Shown here: piece after piece, positions 12,398 to 57,565 of the stretch
How the letters are laid out: each line of letters begins with the position of its first letter
Numbering within the stretch: the stretch's first letter is position 1
Origin: Macrostomum lignano
Taxonomy: Eukaryota
DNA length: 64,000 nucleotides
Direction: 5' to 3'
Assembly: GCA_002269645.1 (NCBI GenBank)
Contig: NIVC01003666.1
Span: 20,071-84,070, forward strand
Notes under the pieces: generated by a model
The model's database searches: none
Told to the model about the DNA's origin: nothing
The model's input: only the letters and a program-made list of their open reading frames with translations
Translations under genes and position numbers: made by a program

Positions 12398-12409
12398 GTT
12401 CGCTTACAC

Positions 12410-15400
12410 TGTCTCCCCCACTCTGGATAAGGACTGTCTCCCCCACTCTGGATAAGGATTGTCTCCCCCACTCTGGATAAGGACTGTCTCCCCCACTCTG
12501 GATAAGGACTGTCTCCCCCACTCTGGATAAGGACTGTCTCCCCCACTCTGGATAAGGACTGTCTCCCCCACTCTGGATAAGGACTGTCTCCCCCACTCTA
12601 GATAAGGACTGTCTCCCCCACTCTGGATAAGGACTGTCTCCCCCACTCTGGATAAGGAATGTCTTCCCCACTCTGGATAAGGATTGTCTCCCCCACTCTG
12701 GATAAGGACTGTCTCCCCCACTCTGGATAAGGATTGTCTCCCCCACTCTGGATAAGGACTGTCTCCCCCACTCTGGATAAGGACTGTCTCCCCCACTCTG
12801 GATAAGGATTGTCTGCCCCCACTCTGGATAAGGAATGTCTGCCCCCACTCTGGATAAAGACTGTCTCCCCCACTCTGGATAAGGATTGTCTCCCCCACTC
12901 TGGATAAGGACTGTCTCCCCCACTCTGGATAAGGAATGTCTCCCCCACTCTGGATAAGGATTGTCTCCCCCACTCTGGATAAGGACTGTCTCCCCCACTC
13001 TGGATAAGGATTGTCTCCCCCACTCTGGATAAGGACTGTCTCCCCCACTCTGGATAAGGACTGTCTCCCCCACTCTGGATAAGGATTGTCTGCCCCCACT
13101 CTGGATAAGGACTGTCTCCCCCACTCTGGATAAGGACTGTCTCCCCCACTCTGGATAAGGACTGTCTCCCCCACTCTGGATAAGGACTGTCTCCCCCACT
13201 CTGGATAAGGACTGTCTCCCCCACTCTGGATAAGGACTGTCTCCCCCACTCTGGATAAGGACTGTCTCCCCCACTCTGGATAAGGACTGTCTCCCCCACT
13301 CTGGATAAGGACTGTCTCCCCCACTCTGGATAAGGACTGTCTCCCCCACTCTGGATAAGGACTGTCTCCCCCACTCTGGATAAGGACTGTCTCCCCCACT
13401 CTGGATAAGGACTGTCTCCCCCACTCTGAATAAGGAATGTCTCCCCCACTCTGGATAAGGACTGTCTCCCCCACTCTGGATAAGGACTGTCTCCCCCACT
13501 CTGGATAAGGAATGTCTGCCCCCACTCTGGATAAGGATTGTCTCCCCCACTCTGGATAAGGATTGTCTGCCCCACTCTGGATAAGGACTGTCTCCCCCAC
13601 TCTGGATAAGGATTGTCTCCCCCACTCTGGATAAGGACTGTCACCCCCACTCTGGATAAGGACTGTCTCCCCCACTCTGGATAAGGATTGTCTGCCCCCA
13701 CTCTGGATAAGGAATGTCTGCCCCCACTCTGGATAAAGACTGTCTACCCCACTCTGGATAAGGATTGTCTCCCCCACTCTGGATAAGGACTGTCTCCCCC
13801 ACTCTGGATAAGGAATGTCTCCCCCACTCTGGATAAGGATTGTCTCCCCCACTCTGGATAAGGAATGTCTGCCCCCACTCTGGATAAGGATTGTCTCCCC
13901 CACTCTGGATAAGGATTGTCTCCCCCACTCTGGATAAGGACTGTCTCCCCCACTCTGGATAAGGAATGTCTGCCCCCACTCTAGATAAGGACTGTCTCCC
14001 CCACTCTGGATAAGGACTGTCTCCCCCACTCTGGATAAGGATTGTCTGCCCCCACTCTGGATAAGGAATGTCTGCCCCCACTCTGGATAAAGACTGTCTC
14101 CCCCACTCTGGATAAGGATTGTCTCCCCCACTCTGGATAAGGACTGTCTCCCCCACTCTGGATAAGGACTGTCTCCCCCACTCTGGATAAGGATTGTCTG
14201 CCCCCACTCTGGATAAGGAATGTCTGCCCCCACTCTGGATAAGGATTGTCTCCCCCACTCTGGATAAGGATTGTCTGCCCCCCCCCACTCTGGATAAGGA
14301 ATGTCTGCCCCACTCTGGATAAGGACTGTCTCCCCCACCCTGGATAAGGACTGTCTCCCCCACTCTGGATAAGGAATGTCTCCTCCACTCTGGATAAGGA
14401 TTTTCTGCCCCCACTCTGGATAAGGATTGTCTCCCCCACTCTGGATAAGGATTGTCTGCCCCCACTCTGGATAAGGACTGTCTGCCCCCACTCTGGATAA
14501 GGATTGTCTCCCCCACTCTGGATAAGGATTGTCTGCCCCCCCCACTCTGGATAAGGAATGTCTGCCCCACTCTGGATAAGGACTGTCTCCTCCACTCTGG
14601 ATAAGGATTGTCTGCCCCCACTCTGGATAAGGATTGTCTGCCCCCACTCTGGATAAGGATTGTCTCCCCCACTCTGGATAAGGACTGTCTGCCCCCCCCA
14701 CTCTGGATAAGGATTGTCTGCCCCCACTCTGGATAAGGATTGTCTCCCCCACTCTGGATAAGGATTGTCTGCCCCCCCACTCTGGATAAGGAATGTCTGC
14801 CCCACTCTGGATAAGGACTGTCTCCCCCACCCTGGATAAGGACTTTCTCCCCCACTCTGGATAAGGATTGTCTCCCCCACTCTGGATAAGGATTTTCTGC
14901 CCCCACTCTGGATAAGGATTGTCTCCCCCACTCTGGATAAGGACTGTCTCCCCCACCCTGGATAAGGACTGTCTCCCCCACTCTGGATAAGGAATGTCTC
15001 CTCCACTCTGGATAAGGATTGTCTCCCCCACTCTGGATAAGGATTGTCTCCCCCACTCTGGATAAGGAATGTCTCCCCCACTCTGGATAAGGATTGCCCC
15101 CCCCACTTCGGGTAAAGACCCAGTTACTATGGATAAAGACCAATGGCTGCGGATAAAGAATCATGGCTATGGATTGAAACTCATGGCTATGGATTGAAAC
15201 TCATGGCTATGGATAAAGACCCCTGACTATGGATAAAGACCCAGTTACTATGAATAAGGACTGTCTCCCCCACTCTGGATAAGGACTGTCTCCCCCACTC
15301 TGGATAAGGACTGTCTCCCCCACTCTGGATAAGGATTGTCTCCCCCACTCTGGATAAGGACTGTCTCCCCCACTCTGGATAAGGACTGTCTCCCCCACTC

Positions 15401-17350
15401 TGGATAAGGACTGTCTCCCCCACTCTGGATAAGGACTGTCTCCCCCACTCTGGATAAGGACTGTCTCCCCCACTCTGGATAAGGACTGTCTCCCCCACTC
15501 TGAATAAGGAATGTCTCCCCCACTCTGGATAAGGATTGTCTCCCCCACTCTGGATAAGGACTGTCTCCCCCACTCTGGATAAGGAATGTCTGCCCCCACT
15601 CTGGATAAGGATTGTCTCCCCCACTCTGGATAAGGATTGTCTGCCCCACTCTGGATAAGGACTGTCTCCCCCAATCTGGATAAGGATTGTCTCCCCCACT
15701 CTGGATAAGGACTGTCTCCCCCACTCTGGATAAGGACTGTCTCCCCCACTCTGGATAAGGATTGTCTGCCCCCACTCTGGATAAGGAATGTCTGCCCCCA
15801 CTCTGGATAAAGACTGTCTCCCCCACTCTGGATAAGGATTGTCTCCCCCACTCTGGATAAGGACTGTCTCCCCCACTCTGGATAAGGAATGTCTCCCCCA
15901 CTCTGGATAAGGATTGTCTCCCCCACTCTGGATAAGGAATGTCTGCCCCCACTCTGGATAAGGATTGTCTCCCCCACTCTGGATAAGGATTGTCTCCCCC
16001 ACTCTGGATAAGGACTGTCTCCCCCACTCTGGATAAGGAATGTCTGCCCCCACTCTGGATAAGGACTGTCTCCCCCACTCTGGATAAGGACTGTCTCCCC
16101 CACTCTGGATAAGGATTGTCTGCCCCCACTCTGGATAAGGAATGTCTGCCCCCACTCTGGATAAAGACTGTCTCCCCCACTCTGGATAAGGATTGTCTCC
16201 CCCACTCTGGATAAGGACTGTCTCCCCCACTCTGGATAAGGATTGTCTGCCCCCACTCTGGATAAGGATTGTCTGCCCCCACTCTGGATAAGGAATGTCT
16301 GCCCCCACTCTGGATAAGGATTGTCTCCCCCACTCTGGATAAGGATTGTCTGCCCCCCCCCACTCTGGATAAGGAATGTCTGCCCCACTCTGGATAAGGA
16401 CTGTCTCCCCCACCCTGGATAAGGACTGTCTCCCCCACTCTGGATAAGGAATGTCTCCTCCACTCTGGATAAGGATTTTCTGCCCCCACTCTGGATAAGG
16501 ATTGTCTCCCCCACTCTGGATAAGGATTGTCTGCCCCCACTCTGGATAAGGACTGTCTGCCCCCACTCTGGATAAGGATTGTCTCCCCCACTCTGGATAA
16601 GGATTGTCTGCCCCCCCCCCACTCTGGATAAGGAATGTCTGCCCCACTCTGGATAAGGACTGTCTCCTCCACTCTGGATAAGGATTGTCTGCCCCCACTC
16701 TGGATAAGGATTGTCTGCCCCCACTCTGGATAAGGATTGTCTCCCCCACTCTGGATAAGGACTGTCTGCCCCCCCCCCACTCTGGATAAGGATTGTCTGC
16801 CCCCACTCTGGATAAGGATTGTCTCCCCCACTCTGGATAAGGATTGTCTGCCCCCCCACTCTGGATAAGGAATGTCTGCCCCACTCTGGATAAGGACTGT
16901 CTCCCCCACCCTGGATAAGGACTGTCTCCCCCACTCTGGATAAGGAATGTCTCCTCCACTCTGGATAAGGATTTTCTGCCCCCACTCTGGATAAGGATTG
17001 TCTCCCCCACTCTGGATAAGGATTGTCTGCCCCCACTCTGGATAAGGACTGTCTGCCCCCCCACACTCTGGATAAGGAATGTCTGCCCCCACTCTGGATA
17101 AGGATTGTCTCCCCCACTCTGGATAAGGATTGTCTCCCCCACTCTGGATAAGGAATGTCTCCCCCACTCTGGATAAGGATTGCCCCCCCCACTTCGGGTA
17201 AAGACCCAGTTACTATGGATAAAGACCAATGGCTGCGGATAAAGAATCATGGCTATGGATTGAAACTCATGGCTATGGATTGAAACTCATGGCTATGGAT
17301 AAAGACCCCTGACTATGGATAAAGACCCAGTTACTATGAATAAGGACTGT
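12410..17350. repeat. 25-bp minisatellite, about 180 copies, containing a ~2.08-kb tandem duplication
   Basis: Unit CTCTGGATAAGGA(C/T/A)TGTCT(C/G)CCCCA. An identical terminal block occurs at about 15095..15262 and 17180..17350. Confidence 0.97.
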
Positions 17351-42764: not shown

Positions 42765-43008
42765 GTGAGACTCAGGTGACATTCGACTGGCACTCAGGTT
42801 ACACTCGGGTGACAATCGGGTGACACTCAGGTTACAGTCAGGTGACACTCAGGTTACAGTCAGATGACACTCAGGTTACAGTCAGGTGACACTCAGGTTA
42901 CAGTCGGGTGACACTCAGGTTACAGTCAGGTGACACTCAGGTTACAGTCAGGTGACACTCAGGTTACAGTCAGGTGACACTCAGGTTACAGTCAGGTGAC
43001 ACTCAGGT
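42765..43008. repeat. 22-bp minisatellite overlapping the GPCR stop codon
   Basis: CACTCAGGTTACAGTCAGGTGA. Confidence 0.92.
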
Positions 43009-44481
43009 AGACCGGCGATTCTGACAGCCCACAGCCAGGGCTTTCCGGCTCGAGTCGCCGGTGTCGGATGATGCGAAATCGTGCTGCGGCTTCGGCTTCT
43101 GCTTTGGCCCGGGGTTCCGGTTGTACAGCAGGTCCATCTCCACCGGGTCGCCGTCCCAGTGCCTGCTGCCGCCGCTGGCCCGACCGCCAATTCCGGCATC
43201 TTCGTCTCCGCCCATGCCGGCGATGGCCGCCCCGCCGCCTCCGTCACCGCCGACGCCTCCGCCTCCGCCGCCGACTCTGCCTCCGCCAGCGCCGCCTCCG
43301 CCTCCGCCGCCGATGGCGCCGCCGCCGCGCCGTCGGGCCTGGCAGGCGCAGATGATGAGGGCCAGGGAGCGCCTGAACTTGCCATTGAGCCAGGCGTAGA
43401 TGATCGGATTGTACCAGATGTTGCTCATGGCCACCCAGTAGCAGATCGCGTGAGCCAGGATTTCCGTGTGACCCTGGCTGACGGGCCGCCAGTTGCTAGA
43501 AATGACATACAGGTGGATCGGCGACCAGGAGATGAAGAATAGCAGCATGACAACCACCAGCATCACGATGGTCTTCTTGCGTGTCACGATGCGCATGCCG
43601 TGTGCGGCGCCGTTATTAGCCACCGCCTCGCCGCTCTGGTTGCCCGCGCCGCCCAGGACGGACTTGGCAATCCACAGGGTGTGGATGATGCGGGCGTAGA
43701 TGAGCACAATGAAAGCCAGGGGCAGCACGTACTGAGTGAGGAAGCTGATGCAGCTCAGGCTCAGCCGGATGATGGACTTGTCGAGCGGCATGAAGGCGCA
43801 GACTGTGGTGTCCTGCGTCTTGTAGACTCGCTGCACTTGATTAGTTGAGCTGTGCGGGAACAGCACCCGGCAGTTGAGCAGGCCCAGCAGCACGGAGGCC
43901 ACCCAGCAAGCTGCAATCATCAGCTTGACTGCTCGCTTGGTGAATCGCGGTTTCAACGGCGACACGATGACGCGGTAGCGATCAACGGCAATGCACACCA
44001 GGGTGAAGCTGCTGACGCTGATGCACAGGCTGTTGGCAAAATAGGCCATTGTGCAGATGGCGTTGCCCAGGTTCCAGTTGTCAAAGAAGACAAACAGCTT
44101 CAACAAGTTGATGGGGATGGCCACGCAGGCCAGGATGATCTGCGCCACCGACAGGTTCAGCAGGAAAATGTTTGTCACGGTGCGCAGGCTGCGGCGCCGG
44201 TAGAGCACGCAGCAGACCAGAGAATTGCCAATAAGCGACGCGATCGCCATGACAACTATCACCACGGCGATGATATCCAGCAACGCGCCTAGTTGCTCTT
44301 TTAATAGGCGTAGAAAATGCTTGCTCTCCTGGTCGAGAACTTTGTCGTACATCTTTGTGGAATTCCCGTACGAAGACTTGTTAATGTGAGTCTTCAGCTT
44401 GTCAAGGTTGTGATGCAACTGGTCCACCTGCATATCCCTTGTCGGGGAACGCGAGACTAAACTGGCCACGAGGTCCAACAT
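43003..44481 (-). CDS. Intronless class A neuropeptide GPCR (RYamide/luqin/NPF/tachykinin receptor-like), 492 aa
   Basis: Seven hydrophobic helices, GNSLV, TNIFLLNLS, IAVDRY, QYVLPL, FFISWSP, WVAMSNIWYNPIIY..NGKFR. First ATG is at 44481; the ORF-track start at 44586 is TTG. Gly-rich C-tail. Confidence 0.93.
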   Translation of the reverse strand: MLDLVASLVSRSPTRDMQVDQLHHNLDKLKTHINKSSYGNSTKMYDKVLDQESKHFLRLLKEQLGALLDIIAVVIVVMAIASLIGNSLVCCVLYRRRSLRTVTNIFLLNLSVAQIILACVAIPINLLKLFVFFDNWNLGNAICTMAYFANSLCISVSSFTLVCIAVDRYRVIVSPLKPRFTKRAVKLMIAACWVASVLLGLLNCRVLFPHSSTNQVQRVYKTQDTTVCAFMPLDKSIIRLSLSCISFLTQYVLPLAFIVLIYARIIHTLWIAKSVLGGAGNQSGEAVANNGAAHGMRIVTRKKTIVMLVVVMLLFFISWSPIHLYVISSNWRPVSQGHTEILAHAICYWVAMSNIWYNPIIYAWLNGKFRRSLALIICACQARRRGGGAIGGGGGGGAGGGRVGGGGGGVGGDGGGGAAIAGMGGDEDAGIGGRASGGSRHWDGDPVEMDLLYNRNPGPKQKPKPQHDFASSDTGDSSRKALAVGCQNRRST

Positions 44482-45074
44482 TGCCGAGCGGAGATGAATG
44501 GGAGACAGGCTTGGTCTGATCCTTGGTCTGATCCTTGGTCTGATCCTTGGTCTGATCTGGGCTCCTCTGGGTCCACTTGGTTTCAATGCTTCGCGTCACG
44601 CCTGTCCTGTTCAAAAATATGCAGGCAATTCCCCCGTTGATTGGATGGCTCGACAAGCGTTCCTCCACAGCTATGGAGGAACCACACGTTCCTCCACTCC
44701 TATCCGTTCCCATTGGCCGCTGGGAGGAACTGCAGCGTGCAGGCCAAGAGGCACGGGGGTCTTCAGGGATCCGCTGACAGCTGATACACTTGTCAGAGCC
44801 CTCCATTCTAGAGTCTTTCGCTAACCTTTCTACCTCTTGCAGACACTTCAACATTTAGTTCCTGGCTGGATTAAATAAGCCTGACCGCTAGCTGGATTCT
44901 TTCGCACCGCTCGCGTCTCTCTCAACAGGGCAGGGAAGACAAAAAAGTGAAGGTGGAGGCTCAATGGCTTGGGATCGGGGGAGGCCCTTGGGACTGGAAG
45001 GAGAGTCGCTCAAGTGTTTACCGAGAAGGAGCTTGTGCAAATGTGAGAATTTTGAACTTTGCTTATGTTATGCT

Positions 45075-47827: not shown

Positions 47828-50442
47828 GACTCAAAATGGCACCTCTGACAGACACTGACACTCAAAGTAAGTGGCGTCCCTGACTGACACTGACACTCAA
47901 AGTAAGTGGCGTCCCTGACTGACACTGACACTCAAAGTAAGTGGCGCTCCTGACTGACACTGACACTCAAAGTAAGTGGCTCTCCTGACTGACACTGACA
48001 CTCAAAGTAAGTGGCTCTCCTGACTGGCACTGACACTCAAAGTAAGTGGCTCTCCTGACTGGCACTGACACTCAAAGTAAGTGGCGCCCTGACTGACACT
48101 GACACTCAAAGTAAGTGGCTCTCCTGACTGGCACTGACACTCAAAGTAAGTGGCTCTCCTGACTGGCACTGACACTCAAAGTAAGTGGCTCTCCTGACTG
48201 ACACTGACACTCAAAGTAAGTGGCTCTCCTGACTGGCACTGACACTCAAAGTAAGTGGCTCTCCTGACTGACACTGACACTCAAAGTAAGTGGCTCTCCT
48301 GACTGGCACTGACACTCAAAGTAAGTGGCGCCCCTGACTGACACTGGCACTCAAAGTAAGTGGCGCCCTGACTGACACTGACACTCAAAGTAAGTGGCGT
48401 CCCTGACTGACACTGACACTCAAAGTAAGTGGCGCTCCTGACTGACACTAACACTCAAAGTAAGTGGCGTCCCTGACTGACACTGACACTCAAAGTGGCT
48501 CTCCTGACTGACACTGACACTCAAAGTAAGTGGCGCCCCTGACTGACACTGACACTCAAAGTAAGTGGCGCTCCTGACTGACACTGACACTCAAAGTAAG
48601 TGGCGCTCCTGACTGACACTGGCACTCAAAATGGCACCCTGACTGACACTGGCACTCAAAGTAAGTGGCGCCCCTGACTGACACTGACTTTTAAAGTAAG
48701 TGGCACCTCTGACAGACACTGGCACTCAAAGTAAGTGGCGCCCCTGACTGACACTGACACTCAAAGTAAGTGGCACCTCTGACAGACACTGGCACTCAAA
48801 GTAAGTGGCGCCCCTGACTGACACTGACACTCAAAATGGCACCCTGACTGACACTGGCACTCAAAATGGCACCCCTGACTGACACTGACACTCAAAGTAA
48901 GTGGCGCCCCTGACTGACACTGACACTCAAAGTAAGTGGCGCCCCTGACTGACACTGACACTCAAAGTAAGTGGCACCTCTGACAGACACTGGCACTCAA
49001 AGTAAGTGGCGCCCCTGACTGACACTGACACTCAAAGTAAGTGGCGCCCCTGACTGACACTGACACTCAAAGTAAGTGGCACCCCTGACTGACACTGACA
49101 CTCAAAGTAAGTGGCGCCCCTGACTGACACTGACACTCAAAGTAAGTGGCACCTCTGACAGACACTGGCACTCAAAGTAAGTGGCGCCCCTGACTGACAC
49201 TGACACTCAAAGTAAGTGGCACCTCTGACAGACACTGGCACTCAAAGTAAGTGGCGCCCCTGACTGACACTGACACTCAAAATGGCACCCTGACTGACAC
49301 TGGCACTCAAAATGGCACCCCTGACTGACACTGACACTCAAAGTAAGTGGCGCCCCTGACTGACACTGACACTCAAAGTAAGTGGCGTCCCTGACTGACA
49401 CTGACACTCAAAGTGGCTCTCCTGACTGACACTGACACTCAAAGTAAGTGGCGCCCCTGACTGACACTGACACTCAAAGTAAGTGGCTCTCCTGACTGAC
49501 ACTGACACTCAAAGTAAGTGGCGCCCCTGACTGACACTGGCACTCAAAGTAAGTGGCGCCCCTGACTGACACTGACACTCAAAGTAAGTGGCGCTCCTGA
49601 CTGACACTGACACTCAAAGTAAGTGGCGCTCCTGACTGACACTGGCACTCAAAATGGCACCCTGACTGACACTGGCACTCAAAATGGCACCCCTGACTGA
49701 CACTGACACTCAAAGTAAGTGGCACCCCTGACTGACACTGACACTCAAAGTAAGTGGCGCCCCTGACTGACACTGACACTCAAAGTAAGTGGCACCTCTG
49801 ACAGACACTGGCACTCAAAGTAAGTGGCGCCCCTGACTGACACTGACACTCAAAGTAAGTGGCACCTCTGACAGACACTGGCACTCAAAGTAAGTGGCGC
49901 CCCTGACTGACACTGACACTCAAAATGGCACCCTGACTGACACTGGCACTCAAAATGGCACCCCTGACTGACACTGACACTCAAAGTAAGTGGCGCCCCT
50001 GACTGACACTGACACTCAAAGTAAGTGGCGCCCCTGACTGACACTGACACTCAAAGTAAGTGGCACCCCTGACTGACACTGGCACTCAAAATGGCGCCCC
50101 TGACTGACACTGACACTCAAAGTAAGTGGCGCTCCTGACTGACACTAACACTCAAAGTAAGTGGCGCTCCTGACTGACACTAACACTCAAAGTAAGTGGC
50201 GCTCCTGACTGACACTGACACTCAAAGTAAGTGGCGCTCCTGACTGACACTGACACTCAAAGTAAGTGGCGCTCCTGACTGACACTGGCACTCAAAGTGG
50301 CTCTCCTGACTGACACTGGCACACAAAGGGGCCTTCCTGACTGACACTGACACTCAAAGTGGCTCTCCTGACTGACACTGACACTCAAAGTGGCGCTCCT
50401 GACTGACACTGACACTCAAAGTGGCGCTCCTGACTGACTGAC
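47828..50442. repeat. 35-bp minisatellite with higher-order blocks
   Basis: GACTGACACTGACACTCAAAGTAAGTGGCGCCCCT. Paired AAAATGGCACC variant units recur near 48835, 49281, 49652 and 49924. Confidence 0.95.
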
Positions 50443-53075: not shown

Positions 53076-54401
53076 CTAGTGATGTCCAGGCCAACGATCC
53101 GTGGAGCGTCCGTCACCGTCAGCGACGCCACAGAGGCGGCGTCCAAGCGCGTCAAAAACTGCAGCACTGTCGGCTCGTCCACCGCCGGCAGCGTCGCCGC
53201 CGAACTCCAGCGAGAGGAGGGACGAGAACAGGCGGAGCATTCGCTCGGCGCGCGACTCCAACTGGCGAATCTCTCCCACCACGACTGTCAGCTGGTCGAA
53301 GACCCGCCTGGCCACTTCAGCGGCTTGGCCGGCCTCAGCAAGGGCGCGGTCGTCCACGCGGATGCCCGGGCCAGCCGGCGTCATGACAACCAGCGAGCAG
53401 GGCGACTCAAGACGCAGTTGGTGCCGGAGCCGTTCGGCGGCGGCGGTAGCCTCGGGCAGGTTGCACTCGTCGGCCAGATGTCCACGAAGGCCGCGCACCG
53501 TAGCGGCCAGACGCTGTCGGAACGCCGCTATACTGCGAGACCGCGAAGCCACCGCTGCAGCCTCCGCTTCGTCAACAACGTCCAGCACTCGACGGTTAAA
53601 GAAAATGACGATTACTCGAGCCGGCGAAAACCGATCAACAAGGCTGTCCAAGAAGTTGAGCAGTCGGCTTAGGCCGCCGAAATCCGACGAGGTGTGCACG
53701 AGCAGGAACAGGTTGACTCTGCTGTGCGAGCTGCAAGGCGGAAACCCCGGCGTGGGGTGCGGCGGATGCGGCGGCAGATGCGGCACGCGCGGCGGCGGCA
53801 GCGGCAGGAAAGCCTTCGCCAGCCGGTTGTCAACTGAATTGGACTCGCTAGAGAATTCCGTTTTGTTAGCCGCGTGGCCGCTGTTGCTGAAGCTGCTCTG
53901 CTTGCCAGAGTCGGCGCTGACCACCGTGCGGCCGTTCACCTGAGTCAGCTTCTGGTTTCGCTGGGAGCTCTCGCCCGACTCGCTGGCTTTGAGCTCCTTG
54001 GCGCTGCGCTCGGCGATTTTTTCTTGCCTAGCAACCGAGTCCAGCTGCTTCACGCCGCCCCGACCGTTGTCCTGGAAGCCGCGGTTCCACTCGACGCTCT
54101 TGGCCGATTTGCGCACGTGCTGCAGGGTGTCCTCGGTGCGGCTCTCCCTGCTCTCGGACTTGGACGACTGCACCACGCTGGAGAATGTGGCCGGGAAACC
54201 CGAGCCGACTGCCGACGACTGCTGACGCTGGCCCCAGTCGAAGTTGTCGAAGTTGAACGGCAGGCGAGATTTGGCGCTGTCCGACAGGTCGGAGGCCGAC
54301 TGCCAGAAAGAGAAGTCGGCGTCGGCAGTGGCCGCTGCAGCAAGATACAGGGCCAGCATCAGTAGGTGGTGGCATGACAACTGAGGTAAGGCGACTGCCA
54401 T
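53076..54401 (-). CDS. Secreted protein: signal peptide, Ser-rich region, Pro-rich linker, degenerate vWA-like domain
   Basis: Single ORF with GC-rich coding style. Hydrophobic N-terminus LLMLALYLAAAATA. C...VNLFLLVHTSS...LLNFLDSLVDRF...VIVIFF...LGRRLC follows the vWA beta-A/alpha1/beta-B layout with bracketing Cys. AATAAA on the minus strand near 52795..52800. The start may be 54419 or 54401. Confidence 0.75.
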   Translation of the reverse strand: MAVALPQLSCHHLLMLALYLAAAATADADFSFWQSASDLSDSAKSRLPFNFDNFDWGQRQQSSAVGSGFPATFSSVVQSSKSESRESRTEDTLQHVRKSAKSVEWNRGFQDNGRGGVKQLDSVARQEKIAERSAKELKASESGESSQRNQKLTQVNGRTVVSADSGKQSSFSNSGHAANKTEFSSESNSVDNRLAKAFLPLPPPRVPHLPPHPPHPTPGFPPCSSHSRVNLFLLVHTSSDFGGLSRLLNFLDSLVDRFSPARVIVIFFNRRVLDVVDEAEAAAVASRSRSIAAFRQRLAATVRGLRGHLADECNLPEATAAAERLRHQLRLESPCSLVVMTPAGPGIRVDDRALAEAGQAAEVARRVFDQLTVVVGEIRQLESRAERMLRLFSSLLSLEFGGDAAGGGRADSAAVFDALGRRLCGVADGDGRSTDRWPGHH

Positions 54402-55500
54402 TTCTGGGCAAATTTTCATTCAAATGTCTAGCTGCGTAATTGCGTGCAAGACTGTTTATTTGGCACGGTGGCTTAGCCAAACTTTTCTTTTGAATTCTGG
54501 CGAAAATGAGAGAGGGAGAGAGAGAGGGAGAGAGATTTTAGCTAATAGTAGGATTGGACTGGGGCTTTGTTAATTCTGCATGTACACAACATCCCCAAGG
54601 GGGTTAGAAAGTTAGGGGTAGAGTTGGTCTATCTGCTCAGTGGTTGCTTCGCTCTGATTGGCTGGGGCAGAGGAGGGATAGAAAAACGTCGCGCGTATAT
54701 TTATCAGTTTGATTCTGATTAGAGTGGGTTGGTTGGCCAAGTTAGTTTGAGAGTTAAACGCCAGTCACAAAAACATTAATGTACTTTTCTAGCTCGCATT
54801 TTGTTATTTTATCATTGAAATGAATAGGAAAGTTCCTGTCAATGTTTTCTTTACTATTCAGCTACAACCACAGATACTAAAATAACTGGATGGGCCACTC
54901 AGGCATGTATACTTAGTAAAACAGCTTTCTACTTTCAGTTCAGTAGCAAAGAAGAATGCATAAGCTATTCTATAAAAAAGCAGCTAAAATGACTTTGATA
55001 AGTTTAGAAGCCAAGCTTGCAGACGTAAACAACCAGCTAATTGGTTCAGCAATAACGTACATTAGCCAGTCCACTGAAATGTACATGGCAGCTTTAGGCT
55101 GCAATTCCGAGAAAGGCAATAAAAATTAGGGCGTGGCGGGGGGGGTAGTGTGGAAAGGCGCGGTTGGAGGGTTTAAGCTGGGGGGAGGGGGTAAGAAACA
55201 ACAAATGAGCCTTGGCTTTAAAAATACACCAAAATGCTACTGTTTATTAACTTACTACTGAACTGAAAGTAGTTTGCACGCAAACCCATCTAGTTTTTCT
55301 AGTATCTGTGCCTACCTACAACCAAGGGGTTCGATTAGCATTTTCAATTCAATTTCAATAGTAGCTTAACAAAACATCGTGCAAGTCTGTATGTATTGAC
55401 GTATTCATGAACAAAATTATGTACGAATTGAATAGTTTTATTGTATTAATTATTCACAAACAGCTGGGTAAACTGCATTGAACAAACCCAGCTCTTTAAT

Positions 55501-55698
55501 TTAAAGCTCCTTATTAATTATGCAGTTCCCAATGTACCGGCCAAATAGTTTTGGCCAGTCGCAGACCAGACCGGGGCAGCATTCGTGATCAAAGTAGCAC
55601 GCCGTGTCAACAGTCTGGCAGGACTTCGCCTTCAAACTGCAGGTGTCTCCGGTGTTGAGCAGACTGACAGCTGTTAAAATAACTGTCAGAAGCTGCAT
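55501..55698 (-). CDS. Secreted cysteine-rich peptide with inhibitor cystine knot (knottin) spacing, 65 aa
   Basis: MQLLTVILTAVSLLNTG-DTCSLKAKSCQTVDTACYFDHECCPGLVCDWPKLFGRYIGNCIINKEL*. Spacing is C-x6-C-x5-CC-x4-C-x12-C. AATAAA on the minus strand at 55437..55442. Confidence 0.8.
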   Translation of the reverse strand: MQLLTVILTAVSLLNTGDTCSLKAKSCQTVDTACYFDHECCPGLVCDWPKLFGRYIGNCIINKEL

Positions 55699-55717
55699 TG
55701 CCAGCCAAGTTGAAGTG

Positions 55718-56760
55718 GAGTGGAGTACACTGTCTGAAGTGGATGAGTACACTGTCTGAAGTGGATGAGTACACTGACTGGATGAGTACACTGTCTGAAG
55801 TGGATGAGTACACTGTCTGAAGTGGATGAGTACACTGTCTGAAGTGGATGAGTAAACTATCTGAAGTGGATGAGTACATTGTCTGAAGTGGATGAGTACA
55901 CTGACTGAAGTGGATGAGTACACTGTCTGAAGTGGATGAGTACACTGTCTGAAGTGGATGAGTACACTGTCTGAAGTGGATGAGTACACTGTCTGAAGTG
56001 GATGAGTACACTGTCTGAAGTGGATGAGTACACTGACTGGATGAGTACACTGACTGGATGAGTACACTGACTGGATGAGTACACTGACTGGATGAGTACA
56101 TTGACTGAAGTGGATGAGTACACTGTCTGAAGTGGATGAGTACACTGACTGAAGTGGATGAGTACACTGACTGAAGTGGATGAGTACACTGTCTGAAGTG
56201 GATGAGTACACTGACTGAAGTGGATGAGTACACTGTCTGAAGTGGATGAGTACACTGACTGAAGTGGATGAGTACACTGTCTGAAGTGGATGAGTACACT
56301 GACTGAAGTGGATGAGTACACTGTCTGAAGTGGATGAGTACACTGTCTGAAGTGGATGAGTACACTGACTGGATGAGTACACTGACTGGATGAGTACACT
56401 GACTGGATGAGTACACTGACTGGATGAGTACATTGACTGAAGTGGATGAGTACACTGTCTGAAGTGGATGAGTACACTGACTGAAGTGGATGAGTACACT
56501 GACTGAAGTGGATGAGTACACTGTCTGAAGTGGATGAGTACACTGACTGAAGTGGATGAGTACACTGTCTGAAGTGGATGAGTACACTGACTGAAGTGGA
56601 TGAGTACACTGTCTGAAGTGGATGAGTACACTGACTGAAGTGGATGAGTACACTGTCTGAAGTGGATGAGTACACTGTCTGAAGTGGATGAGTACACTGA
56701 CTGAAGTGGATGAGTACACTGACTGAAGTGGATGAGTACACTGACTGGATGAGTACACTG
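55718..56760. repeat. 22-bp minisatellite with shorter variant units and a ~330-bp higher-order block, just upstream of the knottin ATG
   Basis: GAAGTGGATGAGTACACTG(T/A)CT. Confidence 0.95.
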
Positions 56761-57565
56761 AAATGTGCATACGTACATGAGTATGAAAACAAGTAGTAAT
56801 TACGAGCTATGGAGAATCGAGCAATCAAGTGATTTATATCACTAAATTTGAATCAACAGCTAGGATGCTACAACTCACAAGCTTCTAACTCATTACCAGA
56901 ATCAAGAAGCCTAGAGCTTTTCGGTACAACGGCAGCAAGGCTTTGTAACTCACATTTATGCAGGCAGCTTTAGCAGTTGCACGCCTTAGCCTTCATCAAT
57001 TGGAAAGGATTCTTGCGTGCAGAGAGCTAATGAAGAATTCAGGACCAGTTTAGCAATTCAGGTATACCAGTGCGTAAGTATTGTAAAAAGAAGCGAGTTG
57101 TCTTTGGAGACAAAAATAGCTTGAAATTTTGATGTTTTTATCGGTTTGTTTATCACTCAGTTATTATACGGACAGAGTGCAATAGCTATCTATGGAAGTA
57201 CTTGATTTGGATTTTGATTGTCAAAAATATTGCCATGGATGAAGGAATTGATCTACTCCTTCATCCATGAATATAGCTCAAATTACTCGAGTATAATTTC
57301 TTTTGTCTATGGTCGCAAGGATGCTCTCTGGTTAGAAGACAATCAAGTGGAGAATTTCAAAGCAAATATTCTGGCCGCAGAACTTCATTTCTATACACTT
57401 GGTGATGATTTTTAATGGAATTTCCACTTGCTTAACTTTAGTCAAGCTCAGAACTAAGCTTTGCACATAGACAAATGAAGGTCATTAAGGCAATATTTTC
57501 TCGATCGGCTGCTTTTAAGGCAATTTCTGTCTATATTCAAGGCTAAATGTAGGAATTCAATTAAA

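Follow-up and report, generated by a model that had tools for sequence, protein, structure and literature searches.

A candidate knottin-like secretory precursor encoded beside a minisatellite in the flatworm Macrostomum lignano

The locus considered here raises the question of whether the last codons of a long open reading frame (ORF), the greater part of which runs through a tandem repeat in the genome of the free-living flatworm Macrostomum lignano, are the end of a repeat protein, an accident, or a small gene in their own right. It lies in a stretch of 64,000 nucleotides (hereafter the window: NIVC01003666.1:20071-84070 of assembly GCA_002269645.1), on the minus strand of which a single-exon coding sequence (CDS) at 55698..55501 runs from an ATG through 65 codons to a TAA stop (55503..55501), at 75571-75768 in the numbering of the contig. 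The product, P0001, is the 65-residue sequence MQLLTVILTAVSLLNTGDTCSLKAKSCQTVDTACYFDHECCPGLVCDWPKLFGRYIGNCIINKEL, after which the stop codon follows. We favor the view, with a probability of roughly 60%, that this is a real intron-less M. lignano gene, of which the genome has three almost identical copies, and that it encodes a secretory precursor with a knottin fold, as in the inhibitor-cystine-knot (ICK) peptides. A first-pass annotation, made from the letters of the window, had set these codons apart as a self-contained precursor at the end of a 425-aa ORF, and the hydrophobic N-terminus and the stop of the minus-strand CDS bear it out on this point.

The anatomy of the precursor begins with a strongly hydrophobic segment at residues 3-14 (Kyte-Doolittle 11-mer mean of up to 2.5), around which small-residue (-3,-1) cleavage candidates occur after S12, G17, and T19. 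By the hydrophobicity profile and the (-3,-1) rule, both of which are heuristic, residues 1-17 (MQLLTVILTAVSLLNTG; 55648..55698, minus strand) are a probable signal peptide, a cut after S12 or T19 being equally possible. This is followed by D18-K25 (DTCSLKAK; 55624..55647, minus strand), a linker or possible short propeptide that holds C20 and a K-A-K just before the knot. The cysteine-knot core itself, C27-C59 (CQTVDTACYFDHECCPGLVCDWPKLFGRYIGNC; 55522..55620, minus strand), has the arrangement C-x6-C-x5-CC-x4-C-x12-C. The first-pass annotation had read the same framework with the length of the last loop left as n, which is now fixed at 12 for residues 27-59. Its count of six cysteines holds for the core and overlooks C20, the hydrophobic region being followed by seven cysteines at positions 20, 27, 34, 40, 41, 46, and 59. 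The loop consensus of ICK peptides is CX3-7CX3-6CX0-5CX1-4CX4-13C, and both the loops of the core (6/5/0/4/12) and its order C-C-CC-C-C fall within these ranges. The core is net anionic, with an isoelectric point (pI) of ~4.7 and a charge of ~-2.7 at pH 7.5, a point that had likewise escaped the first-pass annotation. Six residues, IINKEL (55504..55521, minus strand), separate the last cysteine from the stop; we take this tail not to fit the retention motif of the endoplasmic reticulum (ER) in PROSITE. Beyond the stop, an ATTAAA variant of the poly(A) signal follows immediately (55495..55500, minus strand), and a canonical AATAAA lies 58 nt past the stop codon (55442..55437, minus strand), close to the ~60 nt given for it in the first-pass annotation. 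Between the stop and the latter signal, the two 8-bp arms of a perfect inverted repeat (AGCTGGGT and ACCCAGCT) enclose a loop of 16 nt in the 3' untranslated region (55462-55493, minus strand), an arrangement that could quite possibly be due to chance.

Several lines of structural evidence, at the level of models, are consistent with a knottin. AlphaFold modeled the full precursor with a mean predicted local distance difference test (pLDDT) score of 65 and core values of 74-82, and the 48-aa post-signal form with a mean of 72.9 and core values of 70-85, the linker DTCSLKAK having low values in both models. In the 48-aa model, strands are predicted at precursor residues 33-35, 44-47, and 56-61, adjoining cysteines II, V, and VI, respectively, as in the small antiparallel beta-sheet of ICK peptides. 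These positions match those of Ms11a-2, a sea-anemone knottin from Metridium senile, for which nuclear magnetic resonance has established strands at H8-C9, L20-R23, and W35-R39 and disulfides I-IV, II-V, and III-VI (PMC9866706). Foldseek comparisons with structures in the PDB gave 32 and 34 matches, with target-normalised TM-scores of 0.58-0.79, the majority of which are ICK peptides: Ms11a-2 and Ms11a-3, the double-knot toxin (DkTx), ProTx-1, J-atracotoxin (J-ACTX), asteropsin A, psalmotoxin (PcTx1), grammotoxin, and tachystatin A. A few neighbors, namely colipase, the IGFBP N-domain, and draxin, score similarly to the ICK ones. A search of the sequences in the PDB with phmmer yielded five matches at E<=10, four of them knottins and one a caspase that can be dismissed as noise. 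Top-ranked is again Ms11a-2, at an E-value of 0.0034 over 25 residues, with the common motif CY..H.ECC.GLVC. The three modeled strands, the prevalence of ICK peptides among the structural neighbors, and Ms11a-2 as the best solved sequence relative support the knottin-type reading that the first pass had proposed, and the peptide probably folds like the knottin toxins of spiders and sea anemones.

How readily might such a pattern arise by accident? When the window is translated in all six frames, a loose knottin regular expression matches once, at the core itself, compared with 0.07 matches per window in dinucleotide shuffles; a strict version of the pattern gave none in 200 such shuffles. Markov simulation of 850 windows of 64 kb produced 50 instances of the loose pattern, none of which (0/850) was accompanied both by a hydrophobic N-terminus starting at Met and by a stop no more than 15 residues away. 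The 95% upper bound on the full precursor-like pattern is thus ~0.0035 per window, at which rate tens of chance cases are possible in a genome of several hundred Mb. Since the bound permits this many genome-wide accidents, the pattern on its own is no proof, and other evidence is needed.

Part of that evidence comes from the genomic copies. The exact 65-aa sequence is encoded at three loci of the assembly, on the contigs NIVC01001864.1 (L001), NIVC01001952.1 (L002), and NIVC01003666.1 (L003, the copy in the window). The CDS is identical at 198/198 nt in all three, as are the ~230 bp that follow it downstream, and the ORF is intact in 3/3 copies, even though the adjacent repeat varies two-fold and a neighboring gene is frame-shifted in one of them. 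A paralogue search, which the first-pass annotation had proposed, was run by tblastn over the window and the three loci and found no second copy of either the precursor or its mature part. The expectation that gene annotation would probably miss the gene is refuted by the presence of the exact protein from the three loci in NCBI nr and UniRef, where it is unnamed or hypothetical. The GenBank annotation of this assembly (Mlig_3_7, NIVC00000000) was built solely from a genome-guided RNA-seq transcriptome, by a pipeline that passes from StringTie/TACO, through the setting of boundaries from trans-splice and poly(A) reads, to TransDecoder (the 'coregenes' set; PMC5730564). As the annotation derives only from RNA-seq transcripts, an RNA-seq-supported transcript of the knottin gene very probably exists.

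The same copies clarify the status of the long ORF. A 22-bp minisatellite, TGAAGTGGATGAGTACACTGTC, recovered by Tandem Repeats Finder (TRF) and by a pattern search, occupies 55711..56747 in 49 copies and ends 13 nt 5' of the ATG. Over this array, the mechanical ORF listing holds overlapping ORFs of 425, 387, and 323 aa, the first of which (55501..56778, minus strand) has the knottin precursor as its final 65 codons. The 22-bp unit is without a stop codon in all three minus-strand frames, which is why the 425-aa ORF exists. The repeat has 49 units in the window, 98 in L001 (7932-9988), and 103 in L002 (7827-9988), and the in-frame ATG-initiated ORF that extends upstream is 425 aa in the first case, 172 aa in the second, and absent in the third. 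Given a repeat that is open in three frames, varies in copy number as 49/98/103, and supports an upstream ORF of 425 aa, 172 aa, or none, we reject the 425-aa ORF as a genuine repeat protein. Only the 65 codons are common to the ORFs of all three genomic copies; the upstream part of the 425-aa ORF lies outside the gene, being minisatellite sequence that has no stops and shares the frame by accident. Separately, every 22-bp unit carries CACTTCAG, a possible 3' splice (trans-splice) acceptor, and the TTCAG at 37 nt upstream of the ATG is one candidate site for spliced-leader trans-splicing. Because each unit holds such a candidate acceptor, the array may be an outron that is removed by spliced-leader trans-splicing.

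At the level of sequence, the knottin gene is an orphan. A word-indexed search of 5.8 billion proteins retrieved the query itself only. An exhaustive phmmer search of 1.84 billion representatives retrieved one meaningful relative, P0002, along with P0003, which is a repeat artefact. The E-value of P0002 is 9e-6, summed over seven modules, with an identity of 28-41% per module, and a profile built from the peptide and these modules found nothing further. When the non-cysteine positions were permuted, the observed similarity to Ms11a-2 and to the P0002 modules was reached in 0/20,000 cases; however, both were picked by database search, and therefore only the HMMER E-values count and not the permutations. 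P0002 shares with the flatworm peptide the motif C.xV[ND]TAC.....CC.GL.CD, but it is a large multidomain protein with a short last loop, and its E-value is inflated by its seven repeats. The likeness is probably one of the same structural solution rather than of orthology. P0002 itself comprises 1365 aa and is found in the JGI metagenome 3300045087 (L004/L005, 7-4104), on a contig with sparse, mostly unannotated genes. It combines an HExxH motif and Big_5 Ig-like domains with seven C-terminal tandem knottin-like modules of the pattern C-x6-C-x5-CC-x4-C-x4-9-C, and it is unusual for a large enzyme-like protein to end in a row of knottin modules like this.

Among characterized peptides, P0001 would work like an ICK peptide and most resembles the Ms11a peptides of Metridium senile. 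Both have the framework C-x6-C-x5/6-CC-x4-C-long loop-C, with a long loop between cysteines V and VI that spans 12 residues in the flatworm and 14 in Ms11a. Ms11a peptides match it in the PDB sequences at E-values of 0.0034 and 0.14, are also among the top structural matches, and have their three strands at the positions modeled for P0001. In Ms11a-1 to Ms11a-3, the signal peptide runs directly into the mature peptide. On the other hand, they come from another phylum, and the identity is only ~35% over 25-40 residues, which leaves homology unproven. Furthermore, they are cationic components of a venom, whereas the flatworm core is anionic and the precursor has an extra cysteine upstream and a six-residue C-terminal tail and belongs to a non-venomous animal. 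The spider ICK toxins (Toxin_12, ProTx-1, DkTx, J-atracotoxin-Hv1c, and U2-segestritoxin-Sf1a) share the cysteine framework and the predicted fold, with target-normalised TM-scores that reach 0.7-0.79, and are likewise made as secreted precursors. Unlike them, the flatworm peptide is below the Pfam threshold, lacks a long propeptide, has a negative net charge, and occurs in an animal that is not known to have a venom gland.

Other families that might have accommodated the peptide were also considered. The peptide is not demonstrably a member of the conotoxin O-superfamily, spider Toxin_12, Dickkopf_N, or UPF0506, each of which failed the Pfam profile test. The first-pass annotation had named O-superfamily conotoxins and spider knottins as bearers of the framework. 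The conotoxins of this superfamily (framework VI/VII) do have the C-C-CC-C-C framework in common with the peptide, but no conotoxin family was listed in Pfam at E<=10 and none occurs among the PDB sequence matches at E<=10. The signal sequence of the flatworm precursor is presumably unrelated to the conserved one that defines the O-superfamily, and conotoxin genes have several exons in contrast to the intron-less flatworm gene. For the spider family, Toxin_12 (PF07740) reached an E-value of 0.11, with 13.6 bits against a cut-off of 21. Of the other sub-threshold matches in Pfam, DUF5885 has an E-value of 8e-4 and Dickkopf_N (PF04706) one of 8.7e-4, with 20 bits against a cut-off of 25 and a match that covers only positions 24-47 of the 51 in the profile; the full Dickkopf_N set of ten cysteines compares with 6-7 in the peptide. 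UPF0506, a platyhelminth-restricted family with a knottin fold known from Schistosoma and from the secretome protein A0A183TDP7 of Schistocephalus solidus (PMC8400842), is like the flatworm peptide in phylum, secretion, and knottin-type cysteine arrays. It has two tandem arrays (C-x6-C-x7-CC-x4-C-x9-C-x2-C-x6-C-x5-CC-x3-C-x4-C; PMC8400842), whereas the flatworm peptide has one, and it is unlisted in the Pfam scan of the peptide even at E<=10. In the literature, we found no description of knottins in Macrostomum, and the double-array UPF0506 proteins were the only flatworm knottin-fold family that we found described.

We propose the following path from precursor to active peptide. A leader of 17-19 residues would direct the peptide into the ER and then be removed, and the linker D18-K25, with its odd C20, would either be trimmed at K-A-K or be kept as a tail. 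C20 might thus be lost with the linker, stay unpaired, or form a dimer. The 33-residue core would then fold into an inhibitor cystine-knot with a three-stranded sheet, held by the expected disulfides C27-C41, C34-C46, and C40-C59, the third of which would thread the ring made by the first two. With three disulfides, a form consisting of S26-L65 would have a mass of ~4,550 Da, and other forms would lie at ~5.2-5.4 kDa. On the 12-residue hairpin that joins cysteines V and VI, W48, K50, F52, R54, and Y55 would be exposed as a likely binding surface. By analogy with other knottins, the product would be an extracellular, very stable, and protease-resistant ligand that binds a protein target. Our best guess for this target is a channel or receptor, either of another organism, in which case the peptide would belong to a defensive secretion, or of the mating partner, in which case it would be a gland or seminal product. 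Venom, antimicrobial, and signaling roles are all speculation. Of these, the anionic core makes the antimicrobial one less likely; a cationic antimicrobial mode, like that of a membrane-partitioning gating modifier, fits an acidic core poorly.

A number of observations weigh against a knottin gene and have to be set beside the evidence for it. AlphaFold was run on the single sequence without an alignment; all the Foldseek E-values are >=0.28 and non-significant; and the I-IV, II-V, III-VI bonding is a prediction. The profile search for knottins suggested by the first-pass annotation, run against Pfam, returned no family at threshold, and there is no orthologue or paralogue among the 1.84 billion proteins searched with phmmer or the 5.8 billion of the word index. 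The odd seventh cysteine, C20, would leave a thiol without a partner if the linker were retained. Across the three copies, the CDS shows 0/198 differences where the flanks are ~1% divergent, which has a P value of ~0.15; the copies are too alike for this test to be informative, and hence purifying selection cannot be demonstrated with it. The case for transcription depends on the way in which the annotation was built, and the functional assignment is pure inference. Some of these points are what one would see if the ORF were a chance one, i.e., a transcribed non-coding stretch beside the minisatellite that TransDecoder annotated as the only ORF of its transcript: the protein searches would give no homologues, the three copies no measurable selection, and the cysteine count could well be odd. 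Moreover, the genome is repeat-rich and several hundred Mb in size, the upper bound given above permits tens of occurrences, and the window was picked out of many. Nevertheless, we regard a chance ORF as quite improbable, given that the full precursor-like pattern was absent from the simulated windows, that even a single-sequence model yields a confident compact core, that the similarity to a solved ICK peptide extends to non-cysteine positions (the CC-x-GLVC and CY-x-x-H motifs), and that the reading frame closes six residues beyond the last cysteine, with a canonical poly(A) signal after the stop. Another reading accepts the peptide as real, secreted, and cysteine-rich and assigns it a different fold, such as a disulfide-directed hairpin, half of a colipase- or Dickkopf-like domain, or a C20-linked dimer with other connectivity. 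Dickkopf_N and DUF5885 indeed have the best Pfam scores, colipase, IGFBP N-domains, and draxin turn up among the Foldseek neighbors at similar E-values, and there are seven cysteines. However, Dickkopf and colipase domains have ten cysteines, most structural neighbors and all the meaningful PDB sequence matches are single-domain ICK peptides, the loop lengths fit the ICK consensus, and in the nearest relative, Ms11a-2, the I-IV, II-V, III-VI bonds are experimental (PMC9866706). A fold of this other kind therefore seems to us unlikely, if somewhat less so than a chance ORF.

If the knottin precursor is taken as real, there are narrower accounts of what it does. The W, K, F, R, and Y of the long last loop, which the first-pass annotation had likened to a hydrophobic/basic patch, and the presence of ProTx-1, DkTx, grammotoxin, and PcTx1 among the structural neighbors would suit a venom-type gating modifier of voltage-gated channels that partitions into the membrane via such a patch. 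Yet the core, at a pI of 4.7 and a charge of -2.7, is unlike the typical cationic modifiers, and Toxin_12 is sub-threshold. M. lignano grazes on diatoms and has, to our knowledge, no venom apparatus. Additionally, the nearest relative of known structure is a blocker of nicotinic acetylcholine receptors rather than a modifier of voltage sensors (PMC9866706), and we hold a gating modifier to be very unlikely. A less improbable, though still rather unlikely, account is that of a fast-evolving orphan product of a reproductive gland (a seminal-fluid/prostate, cement-gland, or antrum peptide) that acts on the mating partner. Small size, secretion, and orphan status would fit such a product, and of 76 prostate-limited transcripts of M. 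lignano, at least 64 are predicted to be secreted and 31 are without a BLAST match (PMC5977470); reproduction-related genes of Macrostomum are also reported to be fast-evolving (PMC7336406, PMC8662610). This is a base-rate argument only, and neither the peptide nor the CDS sequence occurs in three text-form supplementary files of the seminal-fluid screen (PMC5977470). Finally, the Ms11a peptides inhibit nicotinic acetylcholine receptors (PMC9866706), and P0001 could be a neuroactive knottin truly homologous to these cnidarian blockers, stemming from an ancient metazoan ICK lineage and serving in mucus defense or as a partner-manipulating seminal peptide amid sexual conflict between hermaphrodites. 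We consider this very unlikely. If such homology did hold, it would point to an ancient ICK lineage in the Metazoa.

The knottin precursor that we favor is best viewed as a single-domain orphan of a known kind and of modest importance. If it is made and folded as predicted, M. lignano, a genetically tractable flatworm for which transgenesis, RNA interference, and in situ hybridization are established, would have in it an uncharacterized single-domain knottin. In that event, it would offer a simple model for the roles of knottins in non-venomous animals and one more stable scaffold for pharmacological screening. It opens no long-standing question: numerous animal phyla have knottin-like peptides, and GenBank already includes the gene, listed as a hypothetical protein. 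For the reading of this genome, the lesson is that long ORFs are mostly artefacts of minisatellites and that small genes may sit at their ends.

This lesson has its counterpart in the wider composition of the window. At a TRF score of >=300, the window contains some 30 distinct minisatellite arrays, the periods of which range from 4 to 57 bp (e.g., those at 12408-17193, 47837-50422, and 1455-2608); their summed lengths come to ~28 kb, or ~44% of the 64 kb. Most of the long ORFs of the window are stop-free repeat artefacts, such as 12404-15106 and 15187-17250 in an array of 189 copies of a 25-bp unit. Spurious matches in Pfam arise from them, to DUF6347 and ComJ, and no stretch passes on its own. 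A scan of the whole window with Rfam produced no match, and a scan for bacterial promoters and terminators produced nothing useful and is irrelevant for a eukaryote.

Downstream of the knottin gene, at a distance of ~1.1 kb and in the same orientation, comes a 447-aa ORF (54419..53076, minus strand) with a signal-like N-terminus and no Pfam match. Apart from a 99%-identical M. lignano paralogue, which is listed as 'hypothetical protein BOX15_Mlig032082g1' and bears the UniRef name 'VWFA domain-containing protein', it has no relative. In L001 (NIVC01001864.1, 11266-12606), this neighbor is split over three frames next to an intact knottin ORF, and may there be a pseudogene or reflect an indel error of the assembly. 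Nothing supports a functional link between the two genes. Farther away, ~11 kb from the knottin gene and again on the same strand, a single uninterrupted ORF at 43003-44586 (minus strand) encodes a rhodopsin-family G protein-coupled receptor, which matches the 7tm_1 profile over its full length at an E-value of 2.9e-47.

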